From: Ophelia neglecta
Taxonomy: Eukaryota
Length of the DNA: 64,000 nucleotides
Direction: 5' to 3'
NCBI GenBank assembly: GCA_965285935.1
Contig: OZ260666.1
Coordinates: 13,144,001-13,208,000, forward strand
Of this stretch, positions 801-34,810 are shown piece by piece. Each line of letters begins with the position of its first letter. Positions within the stretch are counted from its first letter, which is position 1. Under the pieces are notes generated by a model. That model saw only the letters and a list, made by a program, of their open reading frames with translations. It was not told the origin of the DNA and searched no databases. The position numbers and the translations under genes are program-made.

Positions 801-1278
801 ATGACATATAGCTTTTCATTAATTTGCATATATGAAAGATTGAAGATGAATCATGGCTTTTATATGGGTTTGCACATATCTGTCCATTGATAGCATCACC
901 CAACCGCGCTGATATAATAATAGGGCAAGGAAAAAGACAGTGACAGCGCCTTAACTAATTTAATATAAACAAGCGTATGTTTCACAAGACGTAAATAAGC
1001 TTCCCGTCAGTATGACGAGATAACGGTAGAAATGACACATTAGTGTTAAGATTTTAAGAGCTGGTTTGGAAGGAATTCCCATAAAAATATATATTTTTTG
1101 AATAAATAATTTTTTTTGATTGTGCAATGTATGTAATTTCATAAGTTTCATTCTTGATCATCTTTTGAAAACTGATTAGTAATATCCTAAATAATCTTTA
1201 ATACTCATATTCGCAATTAATTTTTCGGGGAATGATATCTTAATGTTTGTATATCTACTTCAACGCAAGTATAAGTTT

Positions 1279-2064
1279 TTACTTGTTAGGATCCAATTCT
1301 GTCATACTATTCTTATTCGCATTTTGTAGAACATCGACCATATCTTGGTTTCCTTGAAAACGGGCTACGACAAGTCCCGTACAGCCACGGAGCGCCTTTT
1401 TGGAGACGTCAAACCCCCTTTCAATAAGATATTTTACAACTACTACGTTGTTGGTCATCAACGCCGATTCGAAAGCCTCGGTTTCCTTATACATTTCATT
1501 TGGTTTGTACGGCTCTTGCGATGCCAGGTGTTCGGCGATATCAAGTCTCCCAAACAACGGGGTTCGGCCTTCTAAGTCCTCGATGTTTACATCAGCACCT
1601 TTCTCAATCAAATGATCTATAACTCGTATATGTTTATTTCCACAAGCCATATGCAGTGCCGTTTGCTTATTTTTGCTCAAACAATCAACTTTAACGGCTG
1701 GCTGAGAACACAGCAAGATGACAATTTCTAAGTGCCCTTTCTCAGCAGCAATATGTAGGGGGTTCAATCCATCTTTGCCAGACAGATTTACGTCGGCGCC
1801 ATTTTCCAACAAACATTTAACGACGTCAATAAATTCATTGGCGGAGGCTGACACGAGGGGGGTGAATCCGAGCTTACTCCTGGCGTTAACATTTGCTCCA
1901 GCCTTAACTTCCGACCGAACTTTTGTATAAGTGCCTGCCATCACAGCTAAGTGCAGTTGGAGCTCAGGTATTTTGGCGCCCTGAAATTCACTGAGTTCTG
2001 TATCTTGATTTCCGTTATCAATTATTTCGTCGCATTGAGACGCGAGCCCAGAGCACTCCCCTTC
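1279..2064 (-). CDS. Gene A exon 5, cytoplasmic ankyrin-repeat domain (~7 repeats, intronless)
   Basis: Acceptor tttttcag|GAA, phase 0. Ankyrin motifs: GFTPLVSA..VVKCLLENGADVN, GLNPLHIAAEKGHLEIVILL, KQTALHMACGNKHIRVIDHLIEKGADVN, GRTPLF, VVKYLIERGFDV. Confidence 0.92.
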   Translation of the reverse strand, partial: EGECSGLASQCDEIIDNGNQDTELSEFQGAKIPELQLHLAVMAGTYTKVRSEVKAGANVNARSKLGFTPLVSASANEFIDVVKCLLENGADVNLSGKDGLNPLHIAAEKGHLEIVILLCSQPAVKVDCLSKNKQTALHMACGNKHIRVIDHLIEKGADVNIEDLEGRTPLFGRLDIAEHLASQEPYKPNEMYKETEAFESALMTNNVVVVKYLIERGFDVSKKALRGCTGLVVARFQGNQDMVDVLQNANKNSMTELDPNK

Positions 2065-5000
2065 CTGAAAAATATACACAGTTAAGGAAAGGTATAAAAT
2101 TAATTCAGTATTTTTTAGAATAAAAAAGAGTTGGATATAAGAATACAGGAAAAAAATATGCATGCAAATCAAACTCATCTGATAAGACATGAATTGGGAG
2201 TTTGATTAGTATTTTAGTCTAAATTGACGCGTTAAACCGATCGTTGGACCTTTAACAACCTTATCAGGCAAACGAGTGTGTTTGTGCCCTACTTCGAAAT
2301 CAGACCAGTGGACAAGTTAGCAAATATAATTCTAGTAAAGTAAGTAACAGTTAATATATTTGTCAACAGGCTGGATTGAATGCAAGGGAGCTTGAAATAT
2401 ACTTTATGAAGGGGCATGTATCCTCGGCCAATTCGGAGAGGATACTTATTGGTGTTCACAGGACTGCCATTGGGGATATTAAACCAAATCTCGAATTCTA
2501 AATTTACTGATAACGCGAATATAAATGTGATTCAATATTTCATTAAACACCAACCTTCGTTCGTTGCAGAATTTTGGTCCCTAGAGGATAATTCCATTTA
2601 TGAAGCATTACAACACAAAAGCTATGTTAATCTGCACTATTATATATAACTGTAATTGTATCATAATCGTAAACCAAACAATAGCTAGGCAACGGTAATA
2701 TCAGGCAGAAAACAGGAAACTCCTTTATATAGTACATACCATGAAAGAACATTTCTTTACTGTCATTAGCAATCTCGAACATATCTAGGATTTTTTCAAC
2801 ATATCTAGGACGACACATTTTTTAGCAAGCGACTCAAAGTGTGTTTTCTGTAAATTTTCGTCAATATTGTACCCTTAAGTTTCAAAATTTGATTCAATCT
2901 ACAGAAATTCAAATATTTAAGCCTCCTATGAAATGAAAACGGATTTTTCTTTCTTTCCCGGAGGCGACATGAATTCCATACCTCTAGATACTGTAGGTGC
3001 CATAGAATGCATTTTTAGTAAAACATAGTAAATTGATATATTTTGACCAAATTTAATACATAACTATTTTAATTTTCAAAATCCAAACATGAGTGCAATT
3101 ACGTGTAAATGAATATGAAAGACTAAGCTAATACCAAAAGTGTGTACTTGTCAACGTTATTAGTCACGCACACGGAAGTTGAATTACCTTTACTTGATGC
3201 TTTCTTTTGCGTTGCAACCTGCACACTACCAACAGGACGGCAGCTACTATCAAAAAAAGCAATGCGATCACAGCGACAATAACGGCGACAAGTTGAAATA
3301 GATTTCCACTTTCCTGAGAAAGGGGTATATAAGTTGTAGTTGACGGATCTCCTAGAGGGATGCTTGCTGTCGTTTTATCTAAATGATTTTCAGCTGATGG
3401 ATCTGGAATACAGAGTGAGGCATTGAGCGTTAAAAAGCTCGGTGTCAAGTATTTTAAGAAACACATAAACCCAATAGAGAATAATGGTTTTAATATTAAT
3501 TTTGGGGTTATTAGTGCGAAAAGCAACAACATACCTTTGACTTCCACGTAGAAGTGTGTTAGACTGGGATTCAATCCAATGAACGATAGTTTCGTTACAA
3601 GTTGTGTATCGCCCACTTCCGGAAATGCGAGTTCTGCTTCGCACTGCAGTTCTTTGTCAGGTACAATTCTACAGTCGTAATGGTCCAAGTCTGCGGATAT
3701 GATACATTGGACGCGAGGCTCAGCTTTAGGTATAACTACAACCAAGGTAAGGTTTCCTGGCTTTTCGAGCTGCAGATGCTTGTTATTATATACAAGCTCG
3801 ATCGTGGGCTCGCCTAGCTTTTCTGTTAGGTACAAAAACGGATAGTAATACTTATGTCGGTCTGGACAAGCTGAAATAAAGAAAATAATAAATTTAATTA
3901 GAGGCAAATGATGTTTAGAGGTTGGTATTCCGTCTTTTGTGTTTCCTTGGAAACAACCTTAAACGTATTACATTAGTCAACCTAATTGATTTAAAATAAA
4001 TGGAAATTGAAATCAACCTGACCATGGCTGAATAAATATTTAACCTTTTGCGCGAGGTTTCAATAAACTGGGCCCAAATATATCCACAAGATGGGTTAAT
4101 GGCGTTGTACATTGAACATGTGATCCATCATGGCCACTTATTTAGGGCTAACAGGCGTTAATACTTCATTGGTATTCATAAAAGACTGTTTGGTCTACGT
4201 AAATGTCATGTTACATCGTTACATCGCGAAATGTTCTAAACACTAGAGTATTAAAACAATGATTAACAGCAGTTCACGCGTCTAGAATACATACACACAA
4301 ACCCGTTTGCCATGGAAAACGCTACTTTGATTCGGTTTTGTCCAGGAGTTGCGTTTATTAACATCATCGCCTTTAGGCTTTAGGTTAAAAATATAAATTA
4401 TCCTCATTTCAAAACTCCCAAGGTTTACTCGAAAAGTTTATAATTATGAAAAAGATTAACACTGGGTGGTCTACTTTAATTAAACTCGTTTACGAAGTTT
4501 TAGTTTACTTATAATACTGACGTAACCTAGCGCTGTAGAACTAAATCGGTTGTTGTTGATGCTTATTTGCATATTACTTATGTCAGATAATGTGCATTCG
4601 GTAAAATTTACCTGTTGATTTTATGACCTTCAGTTCGGCGGCATCGATTAAAGCGAGTTTTTCTCCTTTTATATATATCTCTATGTCATATTGCCCGCTA
4701 TCAGACAACACAGTTTTTTCTATTGAGAATCCAATATAGGTAACATTATCAATCAGAGAGACATTGTTAGTATAGTAACTAGCATTCTCAATAGCACTAT
4801 TATTGATTAGCATCTGATACTGGGGTAGCGATTTTACGAGTCGTATGTAGTCAACCATGCCCAGACTGCGGTTGTAGTTCCACAAGAAGCGGGCGTTTTC
4901 CCCATCACAGACGTACAGTTTATCCGGGCGTTGCAGCCAGTCTGAAAGAGAAACCGCTATTTAGGTTATTTCCCAATAATATTGGTGTGTGTGTTGTTGA

Positions 5001-5557
5001 CAGTGGTCACACTATAAACTTGAAAAAAAAGGGCCGAAATATAAAATATATAAACACATACTTATTGAGTTACAGAACATATGATGAATGTATTAAAATT
5101 GAAAAAAAAACACCTTGACAGCAATAGAAAACTAAAAAATAAAAGATGTTCGCAAAAACAAAACATTGTGGATATATGGTAATTTAATACTTTCATAATA
5201 AGTACTAAAACATTCCATATCTGCCCAATAAATTTTCCCTACTCTCCTCCTTGTTTTCATATGTTAATTATCCAATAGATCAACAGTGTGTGTGTGTGTA
5301 TGTTAAGTATGGTTTATAAGTGATAGATACTTGCATTCGGAAAATTTCCCGTGCCGTTATACGCATGATTAGTATGTGCTGTATTGCGCCGGCTGCCGGA
5401 TAAAATATGACATATAATTGACAAAAAAACATCTCACTTATTAGTATACGTGGCTTGTGATTTAAATTTAAAAATATTTACCCCCTGTGGCGGTTGCAAT
5501 TGGCTCAAAGAGTAGGGAGTTCATTGCTAAAACCGATAGTGCTGTAACCAACGTCAT
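1279..5557 (-). CDS. Gene A: type I IgSF membrane receptor with cytoplasmic ankyrin repeats (5 coding exons, ~580 aa)
   Basis: Exons 5557-5482, 4941-4612, 3870-3535, 3402-3188 and 2064-1279. All introns are GT-AG with phases 1,1,1,0. The total is 1743 nt, in frame, ending in TAA. Order: signal peptide, V-like Ig, second beta domain, Ser/Thr stalk, TM (LVAVIVAVIALLFLIVAAVLLVVC) followed by basic RLQRKRK, then ankyrin repeats. Exons 2-4 are matched by paralog gene B. Confidence 0.85.
3188..3402 (-). CDS. Gene A exon 4, stalk + transmembrane helix
   Basis: Acceptor tattccag, donor AAG|gtaatt (phase 0). Thr/Ser/Pro stalk, ~24-aa hydrophobic run, basic stop-transfer residues. Confidence 0.9.
3535..3870 (-). 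CDS. Gene A exon 3, second extracellular beta-rich (Ig-like?) domain
   Basis: Acceptor tatttcag, donor AAG|gtatgt, 336 nt. ACPDRHKYYYPFLY...; 49/112 identical without gaps to gene B exon 3 (hand count). Confidence 0.9.
4612..4941 (-). CDS. Gene A exon 2, atypical V-set-like Ig domain
   Basis: Acceptor ctctttcag, donor CAG|gtaaat, 330 nt, phase 1-1. DWLQRPDKLYVCDGENARFLWNY...GFSIEKTVLSDSGQYDIEI...AELKVI has the DxGxY tyrosine corner but no B- or F-strand Cys. Confidence 0.9.
5482..5557 (-). CDS. Gene A exon 1, signal peptide
   Basis: MTLVTALSVLAMNSLLFEPIATATG, then phase-1 donor GGG|gtaaat. Confidence 0.7.
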
Positions 5558-7995
5558 ATTGATATCCCTTCTTTCTGTATGTCGTTCTTTCCGATCAGAA
5601 ATAAGGTTGATGTTTTTCTTTTTTCTGGAAGGCGTAAAATGTAAACTTTTATGGTCTATTAAATTGCCTATAGTAAAAAGTAATCTCATATTGAAAATTG
5701 AAATTAATTTTCTTAGAAGATTTACATTGTTGGAACCCACGTTCATACTTTTAATACGACTCCATTATAAACCTACTAGCAGTAATGCATTTAGAACCTG
5801 CAGCTTACGTGGATGATAAGAGAAACTAATTTAAAATCTTGCTTCAACATGTTCAATATAGGGTAATTTGCATTCAGTAAATAGAACAACTTTATTGAAA
5901 ATATATACCTTACCATTTCACTTTCAACCTAAAACGAATCTCCTAGTGGCAGAAGTCATAAAACGTACGGCATGGTTAAACACAGTGTACATTATATGAT
6001 AGTCCAAATCGAATTATTTGTAACGTTCCCGACATTTGTTTAACTGTGATTGTTGATCGGGCTAACACGGTGTGCCCAAATGCTAGGTAATAGTACAGGT
6101 AAAGTTGGAGAGATATTAACGCACATACTTACTTAGAAGTGGTTCAATGTTCACTGATAAGCTTATCATTCACATTGTCACTACATGATAATCCGTGCAC
6201 TTGAGTTTAACAAACACAAACATCCATCATATGAATAGGCAAGCAAACACTCCTCATTTTAATGCCTACTTTTCAATGCCCTTATAGAAATGGGTATAAT
6301 ATAAAACATATAATAAAAAATATTCTCTACCTGAAGCACATAGGGGTGAAGAAATGAATAATAAAGGAAAATGTCTTCCGAGTGATTTGCCGCTGATGAT
6401 TTTAAAGGCCCCATTTTTATGGATTTTTTTTTCAGCTTTTATTATAATGTCAATCATAGTCCCAACACTTTGTTCAGTATTGTGCAACAATAATAAATGG
6501 TATCTTTAACGTTCAGTTTCAATTTGTTTACCTAAAGCCAAAAGTGTTTTGAAGCTTTCTTCTACATTGTAGAATTTCAGTTTATCGAAATGCCATCCTG
6601 TTATGAACTCGTTACACAGGTCAGCAACGGTAATCATATACACCAAGGCAAACATATCTGCGCCGTTTAATCATTACTCAAACTTTGGATGTCATGTGAA
6701 AAACGCCAGTTTACATCGAACAAGGCAGAATATATCATATTATTTTTCCTTGATCTTAGGCGGCCATATACAGTGGCAGACAGCCATTTGTGATGGGCAT
6801 GAAGTATGAACTCAAACATTCCGAAACATATCGATGGCTTTTGCCAATTCTGAAATTAAGTTCTGCCCTTATTTTGACTGATGTTGCCTGTTTGTCTCAA
6901 CGTTCGACTATTACACGCATAGGTTTCGCTAAAAAAGCATTTGGCACAAAAATGTATATTCTTTTTATCCCTCCAGACGGCAATTGTGCTGTTTTGTCTT
7001 TTCGTTATATGAACATAATTATCTATACTGGGTCGCTGAGGATCCCATGTTTCCCGAGCTCCGCCTCTGCTGTTAAAGTTCAATCACATACTTTGGGTGA
7101 CAGGTGTTCTGTTAATCAATACTTTTGACGAATAAGACCGTGGTTATCTAAAGCGCTGTTCCCAAACCCTGTTTTTCCCCGCCCTAGCAGGTTTGAGATT
7201 GCATTTCGGGCACCATATCACTGAGATGACCTCAGAGTCATTGGCTAGCAGGCTGTCGACTATTCTGAAAAAAGAAACTTGTTGCATCCCAACTAGATAC
7301 CCTCTCCCTGGGCATGCATTTACCCCCAAGCCAGATTGCGCTTGGCAGGGATTTCATCTGATTTTTTTCTAGAGTTCAGTCATGGCTTATTGTTTTCAAA
7401 GATGTTTGGGAATTAAATTTTGTTTCACATATATAATTGATAATCAAGGTTGATGAGAAATATGGAATCCTTCATATAATTCCGAGCTACACGAGTGATT
7501 TCAGACATGTCAGGCGGATGGCGGCAGGCGGCAAACACATGATCTATTATCCTGAGAAGCCAGTTTCCGGCTTCAAGTCCACGAAAAAATCTTTTTAGGC
7601 AGAAATTGGCAAGGAGCACTTCTGATAATATTATGATTATAGGTCAAGCTGGTGTGATGAATGTCATTACTTTTAAACGAACTGCATAATGATTAAAACG
7701 TTTGTATACACTAATATAGAAGAGGAAAATAACTCATTGATTAACATGTGGTTAAATATAAATTAATAAGACAGTGGCTATTAGTAAACACGAAACGTAT
7801 TGTTGACAGCATAATAAATACAAAGCTTTCTGTGAAAAACACATGACCAAATGAGATGCGAAGCAGAATGAAGAAGTTGATCATGACTAAAAGGGCTGTT
7901 CTGAATCGGCAGACGCGCGAACGGCGAACGCGGACCTTCAAAATTTGTAGCATTACGGCATGAACTCTGGCGCCGTCAGGAGACTGATCCGACTG

Positions 7996-8560
7996 GTGTT
8001 AACTCGCGCGGGCCACAACTCGCGCGGGTGCCAAGTCGCTCGAGGTTATTTTCACAGTTATTGTGTTTGGATGGTTTACTACATTGCCGTGGAGTGTCAC
8101 ACTACGTATGCAACACCAAACATGGCGGGACACGTTGTTTTGGTCGTGGAGAGCGTAAAAACTAACTTGTGGTCATTTTACCGCCACATAGATCGCGAGA
8201 ATTTGTAATAAAATATATATAATACAGCTCATTCCCATGTCACAGTGCTTTCTAAACTCAGATAATAGAAATTGAATATGTAAGGCGACTACGGATGGCA
8301 CTCGAAGGCGACTTCGCTAGTCACCATAGGGCTTCGTCGGCAAACAGGACGACTTGGATAAAGTGTGACTAGGTTTAGGGTCGAGCAATGGTTTCTATTT
8401 ATTTATTTCATATTTACAAATCATAATAGTAGTTATGGATGTCTTGTCAACACGTCAAACATACTAAACTATATTAAAACAAGCACGCGCGAGTTGCCTG
8501 CCGGGCAAGTTGGCATATAACGTCGTGCGAGTTGGCACCCGTGCGAGTTGACCCGGGATC
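7996..8560. mobile_element. MITE with reiterated subterminal inverted repeats
   Basis: Left aactcgcgcgggtgccaagtcgc (~8017-8039) is the imperfect reverse complement of right gcgagttggcacccgtgcgagtt (~8527-8549). The motif is repeated at each end. Confidence 0.65.
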
Positions 8561-11500
8561 CGACATAGTAAAAGGGTCACGAAATATATATAGACCTTTC
8601 AATATTTGGTTAGAATTCTGTAGCAGACTCTAGCTTTTTACTTCATCGAAATGTCTAGATTTTGACAATTTAAACATGGGGGACTTGTAATCTCTGGCAT
8701 TGACAACTAATATAGGAGGCCTATCATGTTATGACAGAGGGGACTGCCACGAAATTATCAAGCAATCACTGACTGGCAATTAATCACATTAATGGAGGGG
8801 GGGGGAGTACCAGTCGCTAATACCAGCAGGGATGGGCTAGTGATTTGATGGATGGGGGGTGGGGGTCAAGAAGACTTTCCCCCTAAAATCCTTCTTGTAT
8901 CAAATCACTAATTAACCCCCTAAATGATGATTGATGAAGCTGCATTATTAGGCATGCGATTCCCACTAAAAATAATCGGACCACTATGGGATTGCATATT
9001 TCATATATATCTGATGGTGTCACATTTCTCCTTCCCCAAATACAGTTGATTAATGTTAATAATTTCGTAACCCCCAATCAGAACAGGTGGTGCCACCAAG
9101 TATTGGATGGACCCCCTCAGGGCCCTCACCTCCGATGATTTGTCACCCATAATTATTATAAACCCTTAATTATATAACTTTTGTGGGTCGCCTTTGGATA
9201 GAAATTTTAATCTCTTAAACACTACCGACTCAGGCCTAGCTGCCACAAATAGAAACATATATATAGTGCGGTCGAAATGACCGATTTTGTCCGTGACCGA
9301 TTTGGGTAATCCCGCTTTGGTTGTGCCGGTGGTTATCGATTACGGAAATAATGCTGCAAAGCTTTTAACAAATTATTTCGAGGCCTGCGTTTAGTTGACA
9401 TGAAAGGTGTGATTGTTTCAACTTCCAGACTTATCCAGCTGTGCAGGATGTGAGCGATTCGCTGTAGCAGTTACCACAGGCCATTACCATAATGCTACAA
9501 ATTTTGGAGGTCCGCGTTCGCCGTTCGCGCGTCTGCCGATTCAGAACAGCCGACTAAAAGAAGAAACATGCATTTTAGTACTCATACATCACACATTGAA
9601 ACGATAAAAAATACACAGCCAATTGCTGGTAAAATAAATAATAAGCTATGAGTTAAAATTGACCTGTTGAAAATGGTGGTACCGATATATCGGTAACTTC
9701 AACAAGTTGCCATTCGGTTATAGATACGGTACTTTTTAGTTCTTCCTAAACACTTCGTGTTTTTTAGATTTGAAAAAACCATTATGTAGCAATATCTCTA
9801 AAACTAGCTATTTCACAATATTGTCTGAATAATAGAGGGCCTAACATATATCCTAATCGAGTTGCAGATGTCAATACAGCATGACTTAATAAAGTCTTGA
9901 GTGTGGAACCAAATCAATTCTTTTGCGGTGAAATGGGGATTAAAGAAAATAAAATTATTTGAGCAAAATATAATCTCCATATACTAGAAGCACTCTCCAA
10001 TGAAACCGTTTATTGAATTTGTTTTAAAATCTTGAGGGAGTGAGGAGGAACGTCCCGTTAAGGCAAAGTACCAAAAGTGAATTCATATCGTACCTGGGAT
10101 TGATATAACTGCGCCTACAGCTTCCAGCTTCAGAAAGACTAGACAGAATTTATAAGAACATCCTGATTAATGACTGTGCATTGTCTGCAGGGTTTTAAAC
10201 ACATTGCGTGACCTGGCTTCTCCGTACATCTCCGAATGAGTTGAAGTTCACAGATTTTAACGTTCATGTAGGGGTGAGCCCGGGCATCTTCAAAATGTTA
10301 CATGGTGACCCACACTTCTCAATATATGGATCCAAACTATTTACCGAATTGTCAAATGTACGGGTTTATAGACTTTTCCAGACAGCCTCGTGCAGAAGAC
10401 TACATTTTACCACCTGCTTATCGGACACCTTCATGGCCCCCCTGAGCTGTCTGCGGAGCATATAGCGCTCCCTATGAGACCTTAATCTTTCGGGTGATTC
10501 ACATTCTACAACAGCAAAGTTATTTGTCCTTACAGGTATCCAATTTGCTCCTTGGTAAGGTGAATCAATCAAAGAACATTGCTCAAAGAGCTAAATGGAT
10601 TCAAACTCAAACGACCTGACCATAATAAAACCATCATGTAGGCAATTTAATACCTCATTCTGCTCTCCCACGCAGTGGTATATCTACCGAGTTTGTTTAC
10701 ACGTTAACTCTAGACACAATTTTCAGCTCGCTTACAATAACTGATAGAAATATATTTGTAACCTACTATAATGTCTGATTTATGATACGGTTTTATTCTA
10801 GGCAACAGAGGTTTTACGTAGAGCATTACATGTAAAATTGACTTTACAAATCTGTAGCCGTCGGCGTTTTCTTTGTTTGTTTTTGTCATTCATAAATGAA
10901 ATACATGTAAATTATTACTACAGGGATGCATTTCGCTAACGAACTTCGTGACAGGGTGATAACCCCATCTTCATTTCGAGATAATCGTTCATGATCTAGC
11001 CTTTACCAAATCAAGTTTAACACTATCCGGGAGTAGCCAAAAGTCCGGCTGAGCATTGAACACCTGCGGGATCGCTCCCTAGATAATCCTTCATAGAATA
11101 TAGCCATTACCCGGTTCCGCCCTTTATCGCTTCCTTCTACTGGATGATGTTGCTTGGCCCTTACGTCAATTAGGCCTATAACACGCCTACCCTTGGGTGG
11201 GACGAAATGAACCAAAAAATTCCCGTTACTCATGTGATCCAAACTCTCTTTCTCTCCCAGTCTCGTTTCAAATACTTAAATCTGAACATATTATCCAACT
11301 GTGCAACAGAGGACTGTGTATGCGTCCAATGAATGCAAATATTTTACTATTAATTAGAATTATATATATATATATATATATAACCGAACAGACAAAAATA
11401 GACAGAAAGATAGAGATTGTGAAATTGAACCTGATATAATTTGATGATCTTTCTGAGGAATTTACATCAAGACTAAGGAACTTACAAGAAATTACCGTTG

Positions 11501-13008
11501 TTTGAAACAGGGGAAAAAGTAGGAAATATTTTGTCGGCGTAGAAAAAAAGGAACACACTGTGCAGAAAATACAAGGCGGTAACTTTTTGAAGAGATATAT
11601 TGGAAACAGGAAACTTTTTCTTTGGACAACTTTAATCCTCACAGTCAAATAAATAGGAACACGATATAATTCATTCATATTATTTGGTGTGACTGAGAAG
11701 CTGAATAGGGTCAGTCGGGGATGATGTAATAATTCTAGTACAGCCTGCTAGCAAGGAGGTGAAACCACTGCATACCAATAGTCTACACTTGAATGTGGGG
11801 CTAGACTACAGATTTGCAGCGGTTCCATGTTCATTGCGAAAGCTGTAGCTATCACACAAATGTGAAATTTCCCTGAATGGAAAGCCCTCTAAAATGTTAA
11901 TCATCCCTGTAACTTTTGTTTTGATTACTTCTACAAGCACTAAGTAAGGGCTTTAAAAACATCATTCCCATGTTAAATTCCCATATGAACAGCTGAAAGT
12001 AGCCCCACTAATCCCAGCCTTACCACTGCCTTTTAATTGCAATCAGCTTTGGAGGTGAGAAAAGTGGTTGTTGGTCAGCAGTATGAAACATATCCGACTG
12101 GCCCTATTGTTTGGTACAGACAATAAGATACATGTCTATACTGATATTAATACTATAGATTATGCTTTCACCAGACTAAATATTTTTTAATAGATACAAT
12201 ACACTCCAACGAATCACATCCACGGATCAGAACATAAAGCCAATTAAGCCCAGTGTGTACACATGTAAATAAACTTAATTCTCATAATGTAACTTTTTCA
12301 ATTAAGATGTTTTACAATCCCGCAAAGTCATATGTGGAACGAAAGTTCGTTTTAAAACATATGTCCTGATTTTAATTTGGTTGTCATCCACATTGTATAT
12401 CTAAGACACATTTGCCTTTTAAGTGTTAGAAAGAAAAAGTTTACTATTTAACATTGCAATACAAAACAAATAAAACAAGGATTTTTCTTTCTTGGCTATA
12501 GCAGTAAGTACAGCAAAAGTCAGCAAGCAATACAGTCAATCAAACAATGCAGTAGCCGGGAAACCAACAAACATCTGTTCTGTGACCTTTATTGGCAGTT
12601 CAATATTATTATGCATAATGGAATCAATGTTAGTAGAAGAGGCAAACATTTAACAACAACAGGCATTCACATGACATCCCTACAGACGCCGTTATGATTA
12701 TTATGGTTAGGAACATACTATTACATAAGCCATTATACCTAAAGGTTTCGAAGTTAATTATCTTTAGCTTGAACCAATTATAATGGCTTAAGATGTGGTT
12801 TTTTAGCGAAGCATTTTGGTACGCTCGAAAATATTGTTTATGAGGCTGCAGCTGGTGGTTCCTGATTGACGAGTATCCACTGATGTTTTTTCATCATTGC
12901 CCGACGGCAGACTTCCTTTTGCTATATTTTATAAATATTCACTCATCGTTTATGTAATTAACGCGATTGATCATTTAAATTTAAGATCATCCTAATATCT
13001 TATTTCAG

Positions 13009-13328
13009 GTTGGCTTCAGCGTCCGGGCCAAGGTTATGTCTGCCACATTTCTATGGATCTACAACCTCAGCGTGGTGCAGGTTGATTCCATTTACATCGT
13101 CAAGTTCAACCACGACTTGACACAATTTTGTTAGGTTTACAAAAAACCGAAATCTTGAAACAGCCCCTAACCGGATCACTTTCAGCATAATAAACAATGA
13201 TACTTTCAAATTCACGTTGAACAACACGCCAAGGGCTGATGATGGAACCTATGAAATTTACATATTTATTTTTTCTCCCCAAATCGTAAGCAGAGACCAT
13301 GCATACTTGACAGTCATCCCAAAACCAG
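13009..13328 (+). pseudogene. Orphan frameshifted V-like Ig exon of the gene A/B family, inverted orientation
   Basis: Acceptor tatttcag|GT and donor CAG|gtaaaa are intact, but the length is 320 nt. It reads WLQRPGQGYVC / ATFLWIYNLSVVQVDSIYIVKF / HNFVRF...FKFTLNNTPRADDGTYEIYI...AYLTVIPKP across three frames. I found no downstream CPDR or TM exon on the plus strand. Confidence 0.8.
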
Positions 13329-16300: not shown

Positions 16301-16612
16301 GGCAATCACACTTTATTTGACTTTTGGCCGTGCGCGATGCCTAAATCTCCTAGAATTGAAGGTAGCGAGCGAGCTTTTAGGTACTGACTATTTTTATCGG
16401 GAGGCGGCGGAGGTATTCATATTTCTGAGAGAGGAACCATCTTATTATAAAAAGCTATAGTACTAATTGAATACTAAATTATAAAGAAGCTATTCCCTTT
16501 GGGAATAATTGTCATTTTAAAATTAAGTTGTATGAATTATCATCATCGTTTCATTTAGAAATTACTAAAATCAATTGAATATATATGTATGTTTTTATTT
16601 GTGAATATAGGT

Positions 16613-16738
16613 TTAAAACTGGGTTTCTGATGTAATTTGTCCGCTTATTAAAGGGTTAGCTTCTTCACGTCTCGGCGAAACCACATGTCCTTCCATATTA
16701 TCGATCGTTTCGTCCGTACCATCGGCTCTGTCGTCTCC
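16613..16738 (-). CDS. Gene B terminal exon, 41-aa acidic tail
   Basis: Acceptor ctttcttcttgttatag. GDDRADGTDETIDNMEGHVVSPRREEANPLISGQITSETQF*. DETIDN matches DEIIDN at the start of gene A exon 5. Not in the ORF track. Confidence 0.72.
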   Translation of the reverse strand, partial: GDDRADGTDETIDNMEGHVVSPRREEANPLISGQITSETQF

Positions 16739-19700
16739 CTATAACAAGAAGAAAGAATATGTCATACTTACGCATAATGCATAAGCAAAAGTGTGTTTTA
16801 TACTGTTAGTCCGGGCCCTTAGCGAGTTTTAAGGGGGGGGGGGGGGTGGTTCAGATTCGTCTACAATTACCAAATTTCGCCCAGATGTAGACCAGAACGT
16901 ACTCTTGATTTTTGGAGGGCGCCGAGACAGGCGCTCACTAGGGCAGGAAAATTGGTTAAATCAAAGATTGCCGCCAGCCGGAATGCCTTAATATCATAAC
17001 TTCGGAGCTAGAAGTCATAGGATCATAAATGAAAGCATTATTTATAGGCTTTTACCTCAAGGATTCCAAATATTACCTCAGTTTTAACATTAAAGGTGAG
17101 GTTAACCCCCTAATGCATATAGAATGTAATTAGGCTGATTTGAAAGTTATAGACATGCAACATTTTAGAGTCAAAGATTAGATCATATTACAGTTCACTA
17201 CTGATATACAAACTATGGCAAATAAAGCCAAACTCATAAGGTTTACGAATCATCTTAATGGTCCAAGTCCTTTTCCTCTGTGTTTTTATATTACAAACAT
17301 AAATGTGGCAACAATTAAGAATGCTACCCCGCGTTTGTTACAAATATGCTGAGCTCGAGTCATGTGGTAACTACAAACTGTAATGTGATGACAACTCTTC
17401 TTTTCACAATTGTCACGTCCTGATGTAGATATTGCAGAGCATTTTCACTATGAATAGCAAAGACCGTTAGGCAGACCGTGGTTCACTTCGATCAGGAAAA
17501 TTGTCTGACATTCTGGACTGTATCAAAATGCCAACTGTACAAGCAGTTCCATCTCCTCATCAACGGCGTGGTACAGGTCCACGGACTGGGAGTAGGGGAT
17601 GACAGCACATGCATCCCAAAGCGTAATTAGAATCGTGGGTTCCTCAAAAATGAGGAAAACAAAAAGGACTGCATGTTTTACTCAGAAAGGAGATTTTCTA
17701 GAAAGATATGAGTGGGAGGTTCCTCTTAAGCACCAAGTTGGAGTGTGCCCTCTAACCAACCCTATGATGTATCAGCCCTCCAACCCTGTAACCACTCTGA
17801 GGCAGACACAAGGATATTCCTCTTCGCAAATGTTGCAGCAAAGGGTCACAGAACAGCCTAAATATGTCCCGTTGACAGCGAATAAGTACTTCTTGCTGTA
17901 CCATACTTCACCTCACTTGGTTTTTCATAGCTGTGGGCGGGCCATGGTATTGGGAAAAATTTCCATGATATTCCCAAACATGATATCTGGTCTCATCTTT
18001 GACCCTCCAAGTCGCTGGCATTGCCACTCTTCCATGCAATCACAGGATGTGATACAACATCACAGTTCCTTGCCTATGGACAGAAGACTGCCTGGGCATC
18101 TTAGCAAAGCACTCAAGGCTTCACTGAAGCACTGGTGGCCCTCACCCGAGACCCATGACTCTTCACCCTTCTGCCTCCAAACATGCAAAAGCTAAAAAGA
18201 TGCTTGGTAATCATGTACAGAAAGTGCTGTGGTTCGTCCAAGGTCTATGAAGCCAGGTACCGTATGTTTACCTATGGGGACATAGCAGTCAAATCTGTAG
18301 ATAACACATGGAATATTATTGTGTTGTTATCTTTGCCTGATAAATATATGTCTCAAAATTGCAGAGTGCAAAATGCGGCAGCAGGAATACTGACTGGGTT
18401 GCCCCTTGTAACCCTATTATTCCCATCCTATTTGAACTCCACTGGCTACCAGTGAATTTCGAAAAACATTTGTTTTAAGTTTGTATGCTGGTTTTTAAGG
18501 TATTCTTACATTTGAACCCTTATTTAACAAAAAGGTCAGCTATATGTTTATTGTTGGTGGCCCCCAGGTCAAGAGCAGTAATGCAAAGCTAACACAGGTG
18601 TTCCACCCCTGCACAGCAGATCTGTGGAACTCTCTTCCATGCAATTTAGAATCTATTTAGAATTTAATGATTTTAAATATCCAAACAAAAACTCAATTGT
18701 TCAGGGTGCTTACGATAAACTGATATGTGATTATTCTAGTCGTTTTTATATATTCAATATTCCTTTTTTGCTAATTCGTATAGCGTAACTTTAAATTGGT
18801 TATAACTATGTATTGATTGGTCCAAATTTTATGCAGAGTATAATTTGTTTTATGTATACATGTATGTACAGCGCTTTGAGCTTATTTTGGAAAAGTACTA
18901 TGTAAACGTTTAAAAATTATGCTTTACTAGATTTGATAATAATGAACAAACCTGTTTTGATTGTTGATATTTGTGGCGATAGAACAAAGCAGCCAGTACA
19001 CTGATCAGTGCGACTATTGTTAAAATGACGATCACCACAATTAATACAACAATCAGTGATATGTTGTCGGTACCGTTGTCGGAACATAATGGCGAGGTTA
19101 CTGTTGATGTAATTGGTGCCTTTTGGGTTCTAGAGGACAAGGTTTCCATTTTATATTGGGTAGTCTGTGCCGAAGAATCTATAAGATAGAAACCGACAAT
19201 TGTAAAGCTAGTTTCCATTGACAGAAGAAAGCAACAAAGAAATAAAAGAAAAATAGCATTGTAATATCAAGAGCAGTAACGACTCACACTAAAGAACATT
19301 GTACCGAAATTAAGGATACCTGTGGACTTAATATAAAATGTTGTTATGCTTGGTTCACGCGCCACGAATGCAAGTTTGACTATGACTTCTTCATCCTGTT
19401 TACTTGAAAAGAAAATCTCCACTTCACACTCCGTCTCTATATTTTTCCTTCCACTGCAGGCTTGAGCCATTTGGTTCATGTATATAGTACACTCTACAGG
19501 TGGCTCAGCCGCTGGTATCGTAGATCGTAGGGTTATATTTCCAGGCTTGTTCATCTCTATCCGTTTGTTGTTATATATAGGTTCCGTCACAGGCTTCCCA
19601 CACTTATTTGTTATATAGAGAACGGGATACTCATATTTTGGACGGTCAGGGCAGGCTGAAATATTAACACAGTTAATGCTTACTACATAATAGATGGTCT

Positions 19701-20921
19701 TATATCCTAGATTGTATGTGTTCCCATAAAATAATGATTATTTATTATTAGGGAAAGCTTTGGTATTAACTGAAGAAGCATCTTTTCTATTCTGTTTTCT
19801 TCAATATGTTTTCCCCTCTCCCTCTTCTCTCATTTACATGTATAATGAATATACTTAAACATATTATTATAAGTCCGGGTAAATAAGCTGATCTATAGCT
19901 TCACCCTATTGCTAAATATATGTTGTATACAATCATTTATGGATGTATGTATGTATCAAAATAGCAATAAACTGCTGAAAACTGAAAATATTTAATTTTA
20001 CGGGTTTCGATGAAAACAGCTATATTTGCACACTGCCTTGTTATAGGTAATAAAGAATGATAAATTAACCTTTACCTGTTTTTCTTATCACAATTAGACT
20101 GGCAGATTTCGAAAGTATCACGTCTGCATTCGCAGGAAGAATGTTTATCGAATATGTACCATTGTCCGATATTGAAGCATTTTTCAGGGTGAATCCATAG
20201 GAACTATCATTAATGTAAGTAAACCGGGGGTCGACCTCTAAGGGATCCTTGTTCGGGTACATTTCCACCAGATTTTTCCAATCCGGAGGGTCTTTTGTAA
20301 ACTGTGCAAATTGAAAAATCTCAATAGCATGATGGTAGTTCCATATCAACTGGGTCGATTCACCTTCGCATACGTACACTGGATCCGGGCTCTCTAGCCA
20401 GTCTGCAAATAGTTCCATATTAAAATTACATGAACTTTGATATGTTCTTATGAAAGTTGTTACTTAACGATAAGCAACAAACTGTAATGTAATAGATAGA
20501 TACCAATCGTCATTTAAAGTCCAAACAAGATGTAACAAAGAAATTATGAACGGATAGTGAAAACTACTATTTTGACAGATATATAAATATCAAACCTGCA
20601 CGAAGAAACGAAAATATTTGTTTTGTTTTTTCATAAACTCTGAGTTGGGAACATCGACGATTTTCTTTACTTGCATGTAGTTCAGTTTTCTTATTATTAG
20701 TTTGATTTTATAGTTGGAGCAGATTATATTTGTCAAATATTGCAATGCTAGGCACAGCATTCATTAATGAAACAAGTATTATCACATCCGATACGTGGTG
20801 TATAATTTTGTGATGGTCTAAAGCAAATATATGAGTTCTTACTATTATTTGGCTGATCGCTTCCGATCAGGTACACATGTATAATCGGTATAATTAAAAC
20901 TTGAGCATTCATTCGCGCCAT
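16613..20921 (-). CDS. Gene B: type I IgSF membrane receptor, paralog of gene A, short cytoplasmic tail without ankyrins (~364 aa)
   Basis: Exons 20921-20843, 20402-20076, 19655-19320, 19178-18952 and 16738-16613. GT-AG introns with phases 1,1,1,0; 1095 nt in frame; AATAAA 14 nt after the stop. The first coding exon and start codon are less certain. Confidence 0.82.
16807..18285 (+). mobile_element. Degenerate Academ-like DNA transposon (XPG/FEN1-like nuclease transposase remnant) in the last intron of gene B
   Basis: Broken frames give SLRSGKLSDILDCI, QPCNHSEADTRIFL and GIGKNFHDIPKHDI..L*PSKSLALPLFHAITGCDTTSQFLAYGQKTAW. These are the EADT and GCD motifs of XPG-like nucleases, as in Academ transposases. 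In-frame stops are present. Possible terminus TAGTCCGGGCCCTTAGCG at 16807. Confidence 0.72.
18357..18720 (+). mobile_element. L2/CR1-group LINE 3' fragment
   Basis: RVQNAAAGILTG followed by frameshifted PIIPILFELHWLPV, the typical L2 ORF2 C-terminal signature. Confidence 0.75.
18952..19178 (-). CDS. Gene B exon 4, stalk + TM
   Basis: Thr/Ser stalk, then ISLIVVLIVVIVILTIVALISVLAALFY, then RHK. Donor CAG|gtttgt, phase 0. Confidence 0.9.
19320..19655 (-). CDS. Gene B exon 3, second extracellular domain
   Basis: 336 nt, the same length as gene A exon 3. ACPDRPKYEYPVLY...KPGNITL...AEPPVEC. Confidence 0.9.
20076..20402 (-). CDS. Gene B exon 2, atypical V-set-like Ig domain
   Basis: 327 nt, phase 1-1. 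WLESPDPVYVCEGESTQLIWNY...RFTY..YGFTLKNASISDNGTYSINI...ASLIVI. Confidence 0.9.
20843..20921 (-). CDS. Gene B putative signal-peptide exon (coding part; exon probably begins at 20953)
   Basis: MARMNAQVLIIPIIHVYLIGSDQPNN with phase-1 donor A|gtaaga. A strong polypyrimidine acceptor ctctttctctcctccag at 20955-20954 implies a further upstream exon (candidate donor |gtaagt at 21084). Confidence 0.55.
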
Positions 20922-23829: not shown

Positions 23830-24045
23830 AAAATAATGACGGATCAAGATGAAGATGACTGTATGAATATGCAAAGAGTGGGTTGGACCATAATCCTGGA
23901 AGAGATCCCTCATATATCTAGCGGCCATTCCATTAATGCACTTGTAGCCGAAAGAGCTCATAATAAAGTTCATGCGCTGCTTGATAGAAGGCCAATACGG
24001 TGACCGCACAACAGGTGACATAATAGAGTCACTTTTGCAAGTAGT
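23830..24045 (-). mobile_element. L2-type LINE fragment
   Basis: MSPVVRSPYWPSIKQRMNF...YKCINGMAARYMRDLFQDYGPTHSL resembles the L2 consensus ITPVLxxLHWLPxxQRIxFK...YKxLxGLAPxYLxDL. Confidence 0.7.
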
Positions 24046-24216
24046 ATTAGGCGAACGCGGCCCTTTATTACCCATAGTCCTAATTACTCTTGTTCATCTG
24101 ATTATTATATTGCAATAGCTTTTGGTAAATATCGATATCTGTCGCATAAGCGTCAAGGTATCAAAGCGGATATACTTCGTATTAGAAATGCATATATACA
24201 ATTTGGTGGTCAACTT

Positions 24217-24302
24217 TCACTGGAGGGTGTTGTCAATATCCGGAGACGCGTTCAAGGAATCACTGGCAATGTTGTTCTCGGCATTGGTCTTTCCTTTTCT
24301 AC
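24217..24302 (-). CDS. Gene C terminal exon, short cytoplasmic tail
   Basis: Acceptor tattcatctcaag. RRKGKTNAENNIASDSLNASPDIDNTLQ*; basic residues directly follow TM2. Confidence 0.68.
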
Positions 24303-27300
24303 CTTGAGATGAATAATACAATAAAACGTTAACATAATATAGGTTTGTTTGACACAAAGAACATTTCAATCACCAAAAACGAACAAAGAAACAAGGGACC
24401 GGAAAGTTGATTGAGGACAAATGTTAATTATTCAATCTGGCACGGTGGTTTAAAGTCGACGATGAACATAATTGATACAACACAATTCGCTAATACTACA
24501 ATAAATGCACTAATTTAATATTGCATATCATTGCACGATTGATAATTCCGTTTATTGGAACTACTCCATAATCCCAGCGGCGACGATCCAAGCTGATCCA
24601 AGATAAAAAACAATGGTTGACTGAATGTGATAAACCATCAACTTATCTTAGAAATTCCACGATAGTTTTTCAAACCATCCATACAACAATGACGGATGCC
24701 TCAAGTAAAGTGTACAAAAGATGATTTGTTTTTCGTAAGCAAAAAAATAAAAAATTCGCCATCAATAAAAACAACTTACGACGAGGGCAACATATTATCC
24801 CAGACAAAATTACTGCAGTACAAACACAAACGGAAGTGGACGCTAGCAGGGCCAGGTTGAAACCTTCCAAATAATTCATATCCGCGTTACTCTCTAAAAG
24901 ATAAAACATTTATTTCAAACATATAATTTTAAAGCGTCTATCATTAATCGGTAAAATATGTGTGTAAAATAACTTATCACTACCATATAAAGAAGTCAAT
25001 TGTCATTAACAGGTTAAAATTGTCTTTTCCCCTAAAGTTGCAATGTAAAGTTAGTTATTAAAACTCCATATGCATACCTGAATACATTGCTCTGGTAGTG
25101 ATTGGTAAAGTGGAAAACGCGTCCTTCTCGCCTGCGGGTTTTAAGCCTAGAACTAACCAATAATTGAGGCATTTCAACAAAAGCGATATGCCTCATAGGC
25201 ACTGTGAATATATTGACCAGTGATTTTTTTAAATGTTCAATAATGAATTATTATTACACATACTTTTCAAATTTATATTTTTCACCATTCGATGGCTATT
25301 GGGGATTTGTTATATTTATTTCTCTAATGTGAAAACTTTGAACAAGGCAATTGATGAGGGCAATCAATCATGACAACGAATGATTACTGAATGTGTTCTT
25401 TCCTACCTATATATACATAATTACGTGATGCGGATTCATACTTGGATCCCAATTCCCGGCCTCTACAAGAGTAGTTCAAAATACTGTATTCCCCCACTGC
25501 TGTTGGTAAAGGTAGTTCATGTTTGTTTGTGCCATTCTCGATAGTCAAGCCATTGCACAGCCAAATATAAGTCATTAAAGGTCGGTTTTCTTCCGGAAGT
25601 GATGCGGAAGAAACTTTACATGCTAACCGGGAGTTTTCAATAGAAATGGTTGCCGGTAATGGTTTCTCTGCAAAATAAGTCAACACATTTTTAGTTTGTG
25701 ATAGTGCAAAAAAATAATGCAGGCCTGGAAGAATAAATAACAACACTGCATATGTAAACATTGGCCATTGTGTTGCTGAGGGGCTGAGGTAGTATGATGT
25801 TTATTGTTTTATGACAATTTATGAAACAAAACAAAGGAAACAATTGATAATTCAAAGGGACGGAGCCATTAAGTCGTAATATCGGCCACCGTCAGAAATT
25901 GCTATCTACAACGAACGTAATACTGTACAGTAGTTTTCGTTTCACAGCGGTTAAGAATATATAATGCACGCAAGCGGACTTTTATTCCTTGTGGCTATTA
26001 AAGCAACAATTATAGAAAATAATAATTCGGCTGTACTCACCCCAAACAAAGACGACTTTAAATTCACTGTAATTAGTTGTATGACAAGTGTATGTCCCTG
26101 CGTTTTCAATAATTACATTTGTCAAAGTAATTATCACCGACGATTTATTTGTCAAACTGAATGTCATTGTATGTGTTGCTTTTTGGTCGCCCGAGGGAAC
26201 CAACGAGGAGTTGCGAATTATGAACAAAAGACGTCCTTGGTGATAGCAGTTGAAAGTCTGCACCTTTAATGCCTCTGGTGGATTCCAAACAAGGCTGATG
26301 TTATCTCCTTCATAGACTCTTTTAAAACCATTATCTGGGCATAACAATGTTTAAGGAATGTTCAAATAGTTGTAATAAAAACAATTCACAAAATATAGCA
26401 ACCCGACACAATTTTATGGAGACGTGTTACTTACCTGGGACATATGTAGTTTCTTCCGAAGGATGAAGAGAATTAGATGAAGAGGACGCTGTGAATTCTG
26501 AAATAAGGGTCCCGATTTTATGTTTTGGAATGCTAATAATATAATAATAATTCTATATATTTATTAAGCGTATAGTACCGGAAAACCACTCGTAGCCGCG
26601 AAATGTACCATGTTGGCCAAGGAATGCAATAAAATACGATAAAACAGGCAATATGCATTTATTATTTTCAAGAAGAATGTAATGCGTTATTGTCTTAATA
26701 AGTAGTATGACATCGAATGTATTACCCATCAGACGGCTGGTTGTTATCAGTGACGTATCCTTATCTGTTGCTACGACGGTGACTCCGCCTTGGGACGACA
26801 CTGAAGGCAATGCGCCGGGGAAAGAATTATTTTAATAAACAAAAACAATATCATTTGTCTTCTAACGTTGTTATAAAGCAAGAAGACACCTGAATACGCC
26901 AGAGAGGAGGGTAGGGACAGGAAGGGGGGGGGGGGGGGGCTGGAGATTACTTTACTCTATTCATTGATAAGGAACTGCTTTCTACATTGTATAATCATCT
27001 TTTCTATAATGGCGGATTAATTTCTTTGAGTTACTGTCATAAATAATGTTCTGGAAAAAAATGTACCACCCGATTACCACGTTGAGAAATTATATGTCGG
27101 GTTCCCATGGAGTGCCGAGAGATAAAGGGAGAATAAGCGCGACTTGAGCTGTAGCATAAACCTACCTTAGTGTAAAATATATCCTGATACGTTTACATAG
27201 CATAGCATATCCGGTTGCATATTCTATCAATATACGATTAGAGGTTAAATTGAGGGAGGAGGAAATTAATACGGAACTTACCTTTTTTTATACCAAACTG

Positions 27301-28161
27301 CCAAACTAGCCCAATGATTCCGGCGAGAGCCATTGTGGTTAACAACAGTATTGCTATCAAGCCATATATTCTTAGAAATTTGCGTTTTTGTCCCCTATGG
27401 CGTAAAATCAACCTTTGATAAATGTTCTTTCTTCCGGCCTGTTCGAACTGGATGTGTGCCCTTTCCTCGCTGGACGTTCTTCTAGGATACTCATATCCGC
27501 TGCAATCTCGCCGAGTGTCATTTACCTGGCTTGGTCTTGGTCTGTTCACACTATCAGTGATGGGAAGCTCTATGATTTCGGAGTAGCAATGGCTACCGTT
27601 CGAACTGGATGTTTCGCCAGAGGTTTCGTCGGTTTCCGATGAATCATTGATGACGTGCACGCTGCGAGGTAGCTTCGGAGAGCAGTCTGCAATTGTCGCG
27701 ACCACGTTGAAATGTTTCTTAATCGATGTCTTCGGTCTCGCACCTTGATTGGTGGCATATGAATAAGGATATTTCTGAACAGAAGTTCCATGCCCAGGTT
27801 TATCATGTAATTTGTTTTCTTCTATGTTTTGATTGTTAACTGCTCTATCTTGGTGTTCATCCTCGAAAGGCACTTCATAACCATCATTAGGGACCTCCTG
27901 GTCTTCATTTTTTTCGTCGTTTCCAGTTTCGTGTCTTACGAAGGCCGAGGCGTTAGAACAATTAACATTGCCATGAGTACTTCGTGGAACATCCGGGAAA
28001 GTCAGAAGGTCTTTTCGCAAGTTGGTTGTGGCGGGAGGCTTGTAACACGCCGTTTCCCCCCTGTAATTCCAAGAAGGGCGCGGGGCCATATCGTCACTCA
28101 TCTCTGTTAGTTCAAAACTAGTTTTACCGGGCTCGATAGGGAAGAATCCACCCTCGGCCAT
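24217..28161 (-). CDS. Gene C: predicted two-pass membrane protein with Tyr-motif N-terminal cytoplasmic region and two extracellular Ig domains (8 coding exons, ~613 aa)
   Basis: Exons 28161-27282, 26800-26726, 26497-26435, 26334-26041, 25667-25407, 25146-25078, 24893-24780 and 24302-24217. All introns are GT-AG phase 1; 1842 nt in frame ending TGA. Confidence 0.78.
24780..24893 (-). CDS. Gene C exon 7, second TM helix
   Basis: Acceptor ttttatcttttag. FNLALLASTSVCVCTAVILSGIICCPR; donor C|gtaagt. Confidence 0.8.
25078..25146 (-). CDS. Gene C exon 6, linker
   Basis: 69 nt, phase 1-1. GLKPAGEKDAFSTLPITTRAMYS; donor CAG|gtatgc. Confidence 0.65.
25407..25667 (-). CDS. Gene C exon 5, C2/I-like Ig domain
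   Basis: 261 nt. LACKVSSASLP...MTYIW...YSCRGRELGS has the canonical C-W-C core. Acceptor tattttgcag, donor TAG|gtagga. Confidence 0.88.
26041..26334 (-). CDS. Gene C exon 4, V-like Ig domain
   Basis: 294 nt. VYEGDNISLVWN...FNCYH...ITLTNVIIENAGTYTC...VFVW; donor GGG|gtgagt. Confidence 0.88.
26435..26497 (-). CDS. Gene C exon 3, Ser/Thr stalk
   Basis: 63 nt, phase 1-1. tatttcag|...EFTASSSSNSLHPSEETTYVP...CAG|gtaagt. Confidence 0.8.
26726..26800 (-). CDS. Gene C exon 2, Ser/Thr stalk
   Basis: 75 nt, phase 1-1. ccttcag|...VSSQGGVTVVATDKDTSLITTSRLM...G|gtaata. Confidence 0.65.
27282..28161 (-). CDS. Gene C exon 1: disordered cytoplasmic region with Tyr motifs + signal-anchor TM1
   Basis: 293 codons from ACAATGG. 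Motifs YEVP, YSEI, YEYP and YQRL. Basic RHRGQKRKFLR precedes IYGLIAILLLTTMALAGIIGLVW. Donor AAG|gtaagt. Confidence 0.9.
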
Positions 28162-34668: not shown

Positions 34669-34810
34669 TAACAGGCGTTATTACCTCCTTCTCATTTAGG
34701 CGTATTTCACATAATACTAGAACATCACACGCACGATCCATCATAAAACAGTGGCGACATCGCGAGTGAATGGACTGCACTACCCTTGAATATTAGCCAC
34801 CATTATACAA

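Follow-up and report, generated by a model that had tools for sequence, protein, structure and literature searches.

A 64,000-nucleotide stretch of the Ophelia neglecta genome (assembly GCA_965285935.1, contig OZ260666.1; hereafter the window, C9:13144001–13208000 of a 762-Mb eukaryotic genome) holds, between its positions 1279 and 28161, three intact minus-strand gene models for immunoglobulin superfamily (IgSF) membrane proteins, referred to as genes A, B and C, together with a single dead V exon. All feature coordinates are positions within the window, which has a GC content of about 0.36 and no N. The gene models were built from six-frame translations and from the nucleotides read at every junction, and profile searches and fold predictions were run on single exons, taken one at a time. 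The exons are open and the splice phases fit, in agreement with the first-pass annotation, which had proposed three intact spliced IgSF membrane genes and one dead V exon. The A–B–C set is present five times within 0.6 Mb (C9 12.56–13.17 Mb), and the window contains one of these copies. The region is probably one copy of a segmentally duplicated cassette, with members of two IgSF membrane-protein families that are lineage-restricted and cluster together, and for which we lean by analogy towards a recognition role. Direct observation here covers the folds, exon structure, copy numbers, conserved gene order and selective constraint.

Gene A consists of five minus-strand exons, and all of its splice phases match. 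Exon 1 (5482–5557) contains the start codon and the signal peptide, and ends at a phase-1 donor (GTAAAT). The next exon (4612–4941, phase 1-1) encodes an IgV-like domain, as indicated by its splice sites, the family alignment and a profile alignment to the T-cell receptor (TCR) V-alpha domain, and is followed by an exon (3535–3870, phase 1-1) for the second ectodomain, an Ig-like domain with four invariant cysteines (the 'CPDR' domain). The fourth exon (3194–3402, phase 1-0) encodes a stalk, an uncharged transmembrane helix and a basic stop-transfer segment, and its donor lies at 3193 or six bases beyond. The last exon (1279–2064, phase 0 to the stop) encodes an acidic linker and six or seven ankyrin repeats, as counted by eye. 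These repeats, recognized in the first reading of the sequence, score well above the Pfam cut-off (Ank_2, PF12796, E = 1.6e-31, 109 bits against a cut-off of 27.3; Ank, PF00023, 90 bits), and only generic ankyrin proteins matched the exon in the outside search. In five of the five genomic copies, the transmembrane exon keeps its donor and the ankyrin exon its CAG acceptor, even in those with an altered polypyrimidine tract. Gene A is likely to encode a type I receptor, composed of a distal IgV domain, an Ig-like domain, a stalk, one transmembrane helix and a cytoplasmic ankyrin block.

The signal-peptide exon of gene A is 96–99% identical in cassettes 1, 2 and 4 and is missing from cassette 3 (C9:12737000–12746999), in which the alignment ends at window position 5303 and the copy of gene A may be truncated at its 5′ end. 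In every cassette, giant intronless ankyrin-repeat open reading frames (ORFs) of 1,700–2,300 amino acids (aa) are located 7–12 kb downstream of gene A (C9:13132751–13133263, about 11 kb before the window start, and sites at 12549119, 12651120, 12730426 and 13026252). They are 44–45% identical to the gene A ankyrin exon, and may be the source of its ankyrin tail.

Gene B, also on the minus strand, has a similar ectodomain and a short tail. A candidate signal-peptide exon (20843–20921, phase-1 donor GTAAGA) is followed by an IgV exon (20076–20402, phase 1-1), assigned by its AlphaFold2 (AF2) fold and Foldseek, by an Ig-like 'CPDR' exon (19320–19655, phase 1-1), and by an exon for the stalk, an uncharged transmembrane helix and a tail of about 24 residues (18910–19178), the stop codon of which is kept in all five copies. 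The V domains of A and B share 30% identity (E = 5e-19) and their second domains 45% (E = 4e-32), indicating that the two genes are paralogs. The first-pass annotation had given gene B a short acidic tail exon, and the candidate at 16616–16738 was rejected: it is 75–78% identical, with indels, among the cassette copies, and is conserved less than the neighbouring non-coding DNA. By contrast, the 13 codons after the potential donor of the transmembrane exon, together with the stop at 18910–18912, are preserved in all five copies. Gene B therefore most likely ends at this read-through stop, and it looks like an extra tail-less copy within the cassette.

Gene C is organized differently. Its first exon (E1; 27282–28161, minus strand, phase-1 donor GTAAGT) contains the ATG start codon, a cytoplasmic region and an anchor helix: about 265 disordered, acidic, Ser/Thr-rich residues and a basic patch precede a 23-residue hydrophobic helix. 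Downstream on the same strand are a V-like exon (26041–26334, phase 1-1), a second Ig exon (D2; 25407–25724, phase 1-1) with the canonical Cys…Trp…Cys arrangement, and a probable fourth exon (24775–24893, with a provisional 3′ end), encoding a second hydrophobic helix followed by PRRK. The N-terminal array of tyrosine motifs noticed at the outset stood up to comparison, and YEVP, YPYSY, YSEI, YEYP and a juxtamembrane YQxL are preserved in paralogs of 38–42% overall identity, in which the last 45 residues ahead of the helix are the best-conserved part of E1. Phosphorylated YxxP sites bind the SH2 domains of the Crk, Nck and Abl type, and phosphorylated YxxI resembles the Src-family optimum. From these motifs we infer that E1 could serve as a phosphotyrosine docking region. 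Four distant paralogs each show a weak match to the second helix (E = 0.05–0.2), located 550–730 bp downstream of the D2 exon and on its strand. A topology with both ends in the cytoplasm agrees with the positive-inside rule, and gene C probably holds its two Ig domains outside, between the two helices. Taken together, the three genes differ in their intracellular parts much as first described, with ankyrin repeats in A, a short tail in B and an N-terminal tyrosine array in C.

The dead V exon (13002–13333, plus strand) stands alone, and no second-domain exon follows it. It is disrupted by a frameshift and a stop, with its N-terminal motif and its C-terminal two-thirds in different frames and the stop between them, and its B-strand segment is deleted.

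The A/B-type distal exon encodes a V-type β-sandwich Ig domain, according to a model of the fold of paralog B. The AF2 model of the gene B V exon, built with 17 paralogs, has a predicted local distance difference test (pLDDT) score of 88 and a predicted template modelling (pTM) score of 0.82. A Foldseek search with this model matched MPZL1, P0, nectin-1 D1 and Nav beta with a TM-score of 0.81 and E = 2e-7, and the structural matches as a group, which also include CAR, JAML and TCR chains, have TM-scores of 0.76–0.81 and E-values of about 1e-7. E does not exceed 0.001 in any of the best 500 matches, and almost all of the 50 listed are Ig domains of the V type. The Pfam V-set profile (PF07686, gathering cut-off 26 bits) scored below its cut-off throughout (B V, 16.3 bits; C V, 22.7 bits, E = 1.2e-4; A V, no match), and the A/B V family profile matched TCR V-alpha chains in the Protein Data Bank with E = 2.5e-4. 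The second domain of A was also modelled as an Ig-like β-sandwich (pLDDT 90) with four invariant cysteines. It matched a filamin repeat (Z = 10.9), SYG-2 D2 (9.7) and ICAM-1 D3 (9.2) in VIA, titin I1 in Foldseek, and ICAM and Big_2 domains in Atlas; a Pfam search with the A/B second domain gave no match.

The V domains depart from the canonical Ig pin, as judged by residues invariant across 18–20 paralogs. In the A/B type, an invariant Trp occupies exactly the place of Cys23, Ile or Met occupies that of Cys104 (Ile in A), and the Trp41 column is variable, so that the Cys23–Trp41–Cys104 pin is lost; one Cys in the A′ strand is invariant. In the C type, Trp is likewise found at the Cys23 place, an invariant Cys is located at the Trp41 place ('NCY'), and Cys104 is kept. 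The Cys and Trp pin positions thus seem to be swapped, which hints at a non-canonical disulfide between the C and F strands. The D-x-G-x-Y motif before the F strand is conserved (DSGxY, DNGTY and DAGTY). Replacement of the B-strand Cys by Trp had been ascribed to all V-like domains of the region, and this holds for A, B and C, in which the Trp is invariant across paralogs; the dead exon lacks the segment. Alignment of the C-type to the A/B-type V domains with hhalign (E = 1.3e-4, probability 54%) pairs both Trp residues and indicates a remote relationship.

Both families are large. Searches of the same genome yielded at least 150 matches for the second domain of A (282 candidates, 4 with a stop), 135 for the V domain of B (213 candidates, 3 with a stop), 130 for the V domain of C (225 candidates, none with a stop), at least 150 for D2 of C (288 candidates) and 29 for E1 of C (36 candidates). 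The genome-wide count suggested by the first-pass annotation thus comes to at least 135–150 exon matches for the A/B type and at least 130–150 for the C type, nearly all of them open. About 83% of the second-domain matches listed are located on C9 between 0.3 and 23.6 Mb. The genes of the family are clustered, and some pseudo-exons occur among them.

The order of the exons and genes is conserved at a distance from the window, where we judged it from coordinates alone. Relatives of the ankyrin exon (41–43% identity) are found at C9 10.92, 11.08, 11.83, 12.89 and 13.31 Mb. Each of them follows V and second-domain exons on the same strand, at a distance of 0.8–6 kb, and these exons share 33–39% identity with those of the window. 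The V, Ig-like and ankyrin exons are thus collinear in the five cassettes and in five distant paralogs. Similarly, E1-like ORFs are followed by C-type V and D2 exons on the same strand at no fewer than 18 loci (27–45% identity). A C-type gene is located directly upstream of an ankyrin-type gene at C9 10.94, 11.10, 11.81, 12.90 and 13.32 Mb, and the basic conserved unit is therefore a C-type gene plus an ankyrin-type gene. Because this upstream–downstream pairing is conserved, it suggests that the two types of protein may act together. Pfam searches of the genome for TIR, Death and Mab-21 domains gave no match beside any family member. Elsewhere, the genome has at least 150 TIR-domain matches, mostly in single ORFs of 800–1,000 aa resembling Toll-like receptors (TLRs), and 79 Mab-21 matches in ORFs of 500–900 aa, and these two sets are very large expansions of innate-immune genes.

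Comparison of the cassettes indicates that the coding exons are constrained. All exons are open in all five copies, except the doubtful B tail exon, and the only gap is the A signal-peptide exon of cassette 3. Gene B exons differ by 3–8% between cassettes, as compared with 6–13% in well-aligned introns and flanks (pooled, 5.4% versus 11.6%; Fisher p = 1.6e-7), and the gene B signal-peptide exon differs by 2.5–5% versus 11–13% in the adjoining intron. The ratio of non-synonymous to synonymous substitution rates (dN/dS) is mostly 0.15–0.85 across exons. Between cassettes it is about 0.5 for the V domain of B, 0.4–0.8 for its second domain, 0.2 for its transmembrane exon, 0.15–0.35 for D2 of C and 0.4–0.6 for the ankyrin exon of A, with a value of about 1 for E1 of C. 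Because the adjacent intron has nine indels in 1155 columns, about six would be expected in the ankyrin exon, and it has none (Poisson p ~ 0.002). Between paralogs, dN/dS of the V domain is 0.25–0.75, with 1.77 in one single pair; in the four other close-paralog groups, to which that pair belongs, the remaining V values are 0.25–0.39 and those of the second domain are 0.2–0.85. The distal V domains had been described as divergent, in the manner of immune receptors, and this description did not survive: V evolves no faster than the second domain in the four close-paralog groups, and its dN/dS is below 1 in all but the one pair. These comparisons are between paralogs; the short-read DNA contigs of a single sample carry variants that may be allelic or may separate the five near-identical copies, and were left out.

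The divergence between cassettes is mosaic. Relative to cassette 3, the tract of gene A from the V exon to the transmembrane exon differs by 0–1.5%, introns included, and the ankyrin half by 6–6.5%; in gene C, the half from E1 to the V exon differs by 0–1.6% and the D2 half by 3.5–10%. In the compared tracts of the window (1200–5700 and 24100–28400), the breakpoints fall between the transmembrane and ankyrin exons of A and between the V and D2 exons of C. Because of this mosaic, we attribute the pattern to gene conversion or unequal exchange between cassettes and, judging from the alignments, the cassette copies are partly homogenized by gene conversion, not diversified. Outside the genes, the window contains a G-rich minisatellite at 31637–31971 (19-bp unit, 79-bp higher-order unit, about 17 copies). 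GC skew is 0.23–0.31 in the interval 30000–40000, strongly positive over most of the surroundings of the minisatellite, and long ORFs are absent there.

Searches outside this genome found no annotated relative. Word-indexed searches with the second-domain ORF and with E1 of gene C gave no match. An exhaustive search of 1.84 billion representative proteins with the second-domain profile gave 18 matches, mostly exon-sized fragments. Those looked up are nameless entries of Logan or ENA assemblies, and an annotated animal protein was not among the eight clusters looked up. The five matches that we inspected are probably single genomic exons of related species. The matches also include two repetitive ENA ORFs and a bacterial Ig-repeat protein, whose similarity seems to be of a generic Ig-like kind and which were set aside. 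On the ENA contig ctg15293l, an unrelated metazoan-like contig, adjacent ORFs of 1,012 and 803 aa (6364–12412) are located beside a Pao retrotransposon; the 803-aa ORF, the one scored, contains about eight tandem repeats with weak similarity to the central part of the 'CPDR' profile. The two families are orphans in the sense that they have no annotated relative in the databases searched. In the literature, we found no description of a receptor combining an Ig ectodomain with a cytoplasmic ankyrin block.

The closest parallel of this family, by analogy, is the Hydractinia Alr system. Domain 1 of the Alr proteins has a V-set fold without the pin, in which both cysteines are lacking, Trp, Phe or Tyr takes the place of Cys23, and positions 41 and 104 are hydrophobic, and 41 Alr genes reside in a multi-megabase allorecognition complex with pseudogenes (Huene et al. 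2022, PMC9546547). The family described here resembles Alr in its V-set fold without the Cys23–Trp41–Cys104 pin and with an aromatic residue at Cys23, in the extra invariant cysteines of the membrane-proximal domain, in tails that vary more than the ectodomains and in some cases carry tyrosine motifs, and in its multi-megabase cluster with pseudogenes. This is a resemblance and not a proof of membership. Unlike Alr, which has an I-set and an Fn3-like domain, the family has a single Ig-like second domain; its tails are ankyrin repeats or almost nothing; its partner family is N-terminally anchored, with YxxP and YxxI motifs in place of immunoreceptor tyrosine-based activation or inhibitory motifs (ITAMs or ITIMs); and it comprises at least about 280 exon sets, as compared with 41 Alr genes.

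Other known systems share parts of the design. The vertebrate paired receptors (KIR, LILR, Siglec and CD300, and the fish NITR) are also clustered, duplicating IgSF type I receptors with neighbouring long and short tails. However, the paired signalling and non-signalling tails that the first-pass annotation had likened to KIR, Siglec, CD300 and NITR were not borne out: the A and B ectodomains are not near-identical (30% for the V and 45% for the second domains), ITIMs, ITAMs and immunoreceptor tyrosine-based switch motifs (ITSMs) are absent, and the transmembrane helices of A and B have no charged residue for pairing with ITAM adaptors. Of the lineage-specific recognition receptor family proposed at the outset, what stands is a lineage-restricted and heavily expanded set of IgSF membrane receptors; the V divergence and the paired-tail comparison fall away. 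MPZ/P0, MPZL1, nectins, CAR, JAML and Nav beta similarly have one distal V domain on a single-pass protein (TM-score 0.76–0.81), but they keep the canonical disulfide, belong to small conserved families and are never ankyrin-tailed. Notch is likewise a single-pass receptor with a cytoplasmic ankyrin-repeat block, and this likeness suggests that the ankyrin tail of gene A may be a docking module, possibly a releasable one. Unlike the ectodomains described here, that of Notch is built of EGF and LNR modules, and the sequence relationship is only that of generic ankyrin repeats.

We lean towards a recognition role for this family, immune or self/non-self, and several results weigh against it. Scans for ITIM, ITAM and ITSM motifs, by regular expression in E1 of gene C and by eye in the short tails of A and B, found none. 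Consistent diversifying selection on the V domain was not seen between cassettes or in the four close-paralog groups, and the ectodomain of A is almost identical in all five copies, so that the locus does not look like a diversified recognition repertoire. Of two signatures expected of an immune or allorecognition locus, paired tails with ITIMs or charged transmembrane helices were not found, and diversifying selection on V gave no consistent sign between paralogs. A complex prediction for the V domains of A and C scored 0.01 and gave no answer, which speaks neither for nor against the proposal, and the two-helix topology of gene C rests on weak matches. A rival reading is that the proteins, instead of serving immunity or allorecognition, make up a code for cell adhesion or wiring, as do Dpr/DIP and Beat/Side in insects and nectins, JAMs and MPZ in vertebrates. 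In its favour, V finds its best structural matches among adhesion molecules (MPZL1, P0, nectins, CAR, JAML and Nav beta), the second domain matches SYG-2 and ICAM, the selection seen is purifying to relaxed, and the motif scan found no ITIM or ITAM. Structural neighbours are, however, uninformative on function, and a developmental adhesion code tends to have conserved orthologs, so that several hundred young duplicates that undergo gene conversion and lack annotated relatives would be unusual for one. We regard an adhesion or wiring code as a real but minor possibility, and the immune or allorecognition reading as plausible by analogy.

A different concern is whether the architectures exist as proteins at all. 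The gene models rest on genomic DNA, a search of sequencing runs having listed no RNA run that covers the region, and the ankyrin exon might be a separate gene or a fragment of a giant ankyrin gene, just as E1 might belong to another transcript. The giant ankyrin ORFs that accompany gene A in every cassette are consistent with such an error, as is the in-frame stop 13 to 27 bases beyond the two possible donors of its transmembrane exon, which would allow a short-tailed product. The ankyrin exon is, moreover, nearly neutral between cassette groups: its divergence of 6.5% is close to that of the introns (6.0–6.3%), and dN/dS, at 0.6, does not fall significantly short of 1. Against this, the phase-0 donor matches the phase-0 acceptor and both are kept in five of five copies, the V, Ig-like and ankyrin order is kept on one strand at five distant loci with proteins of 35–43% identity, E1, V and D2 succeed one another in the same order at 18 or more loci, and the ankyrin exon has neither an indel nor a stop. 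Partly wrong models are therefore unlikely, and the anatomy of the three genes is real and well supported, short of RNA. Least probable of all, in our estimation, is that the genes are bilaterian homologs of Alr, from an ancient pin-less V-set lineage, and not a convergent invention. The shared pin-less domain 1, the multi-megabase complex with pseudogenes, the tyrosine-motif tails and the extra invariant membrane-proximal cysteines (PMC9546547) speak for common descent. The architectures nevertheless differ, in that Alr proteins have neither an ankyrin block nor an N-terminal anchor; the mid-domain profile search, made with the second domain only, found no annotated protein of any species; and the pin has been lost more than once in the IgSF. 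The genome examined here also has its many TIR-domain matches in single ORFs of TLR size, a set that, to our knowledge, does not fit a hydrozoan.

If the family does act in recognition, the V domains would engage a ligand presented by a microbe or by a neighbouring cell. Once clustered, the receptors could bring a cytosolic partner to the ankyrin block of A, and let Src-type kinases phosphorylate the YxxP and YxxI sites of C, on which SH2 adaptors would dock. B might act as a tail-less co-receptor or as a decoy. A bolder proposal, which we consider improbable as it stands, is that the first 24 Mb of the chromosome form a histocompatibility-like or immune complex of several hundred genes, in which two orphan IgSF families would work as pairs, a type I pin-less-V receptor with ankyrin signalling and a two-pass Ig protein with YxxP/YxxI phosphotyrosine signalling. 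In that case the pin-less V domain would either be a second, independent invention of the Alr solution or go back to an ancient V-set lineage common to cnidarians and bilaterians.

Self/non-self recognition, in vertebrates and in the few invertebrates studied, is built on clustered, fast-duplicating IgSF receptors. The new family would widen what counts as an Ig receptor, with its hundreds of members, its pin-less V domain and its Ig–transmembrane–ankyrin design, and its partner family seems to place Ig domains between two membrane helices. The gene-conversion mosaics make the locus a tractable one for studying concerted evolution versus diversification, and the family may join Hydractinia as a second test case for the origin of such systems.

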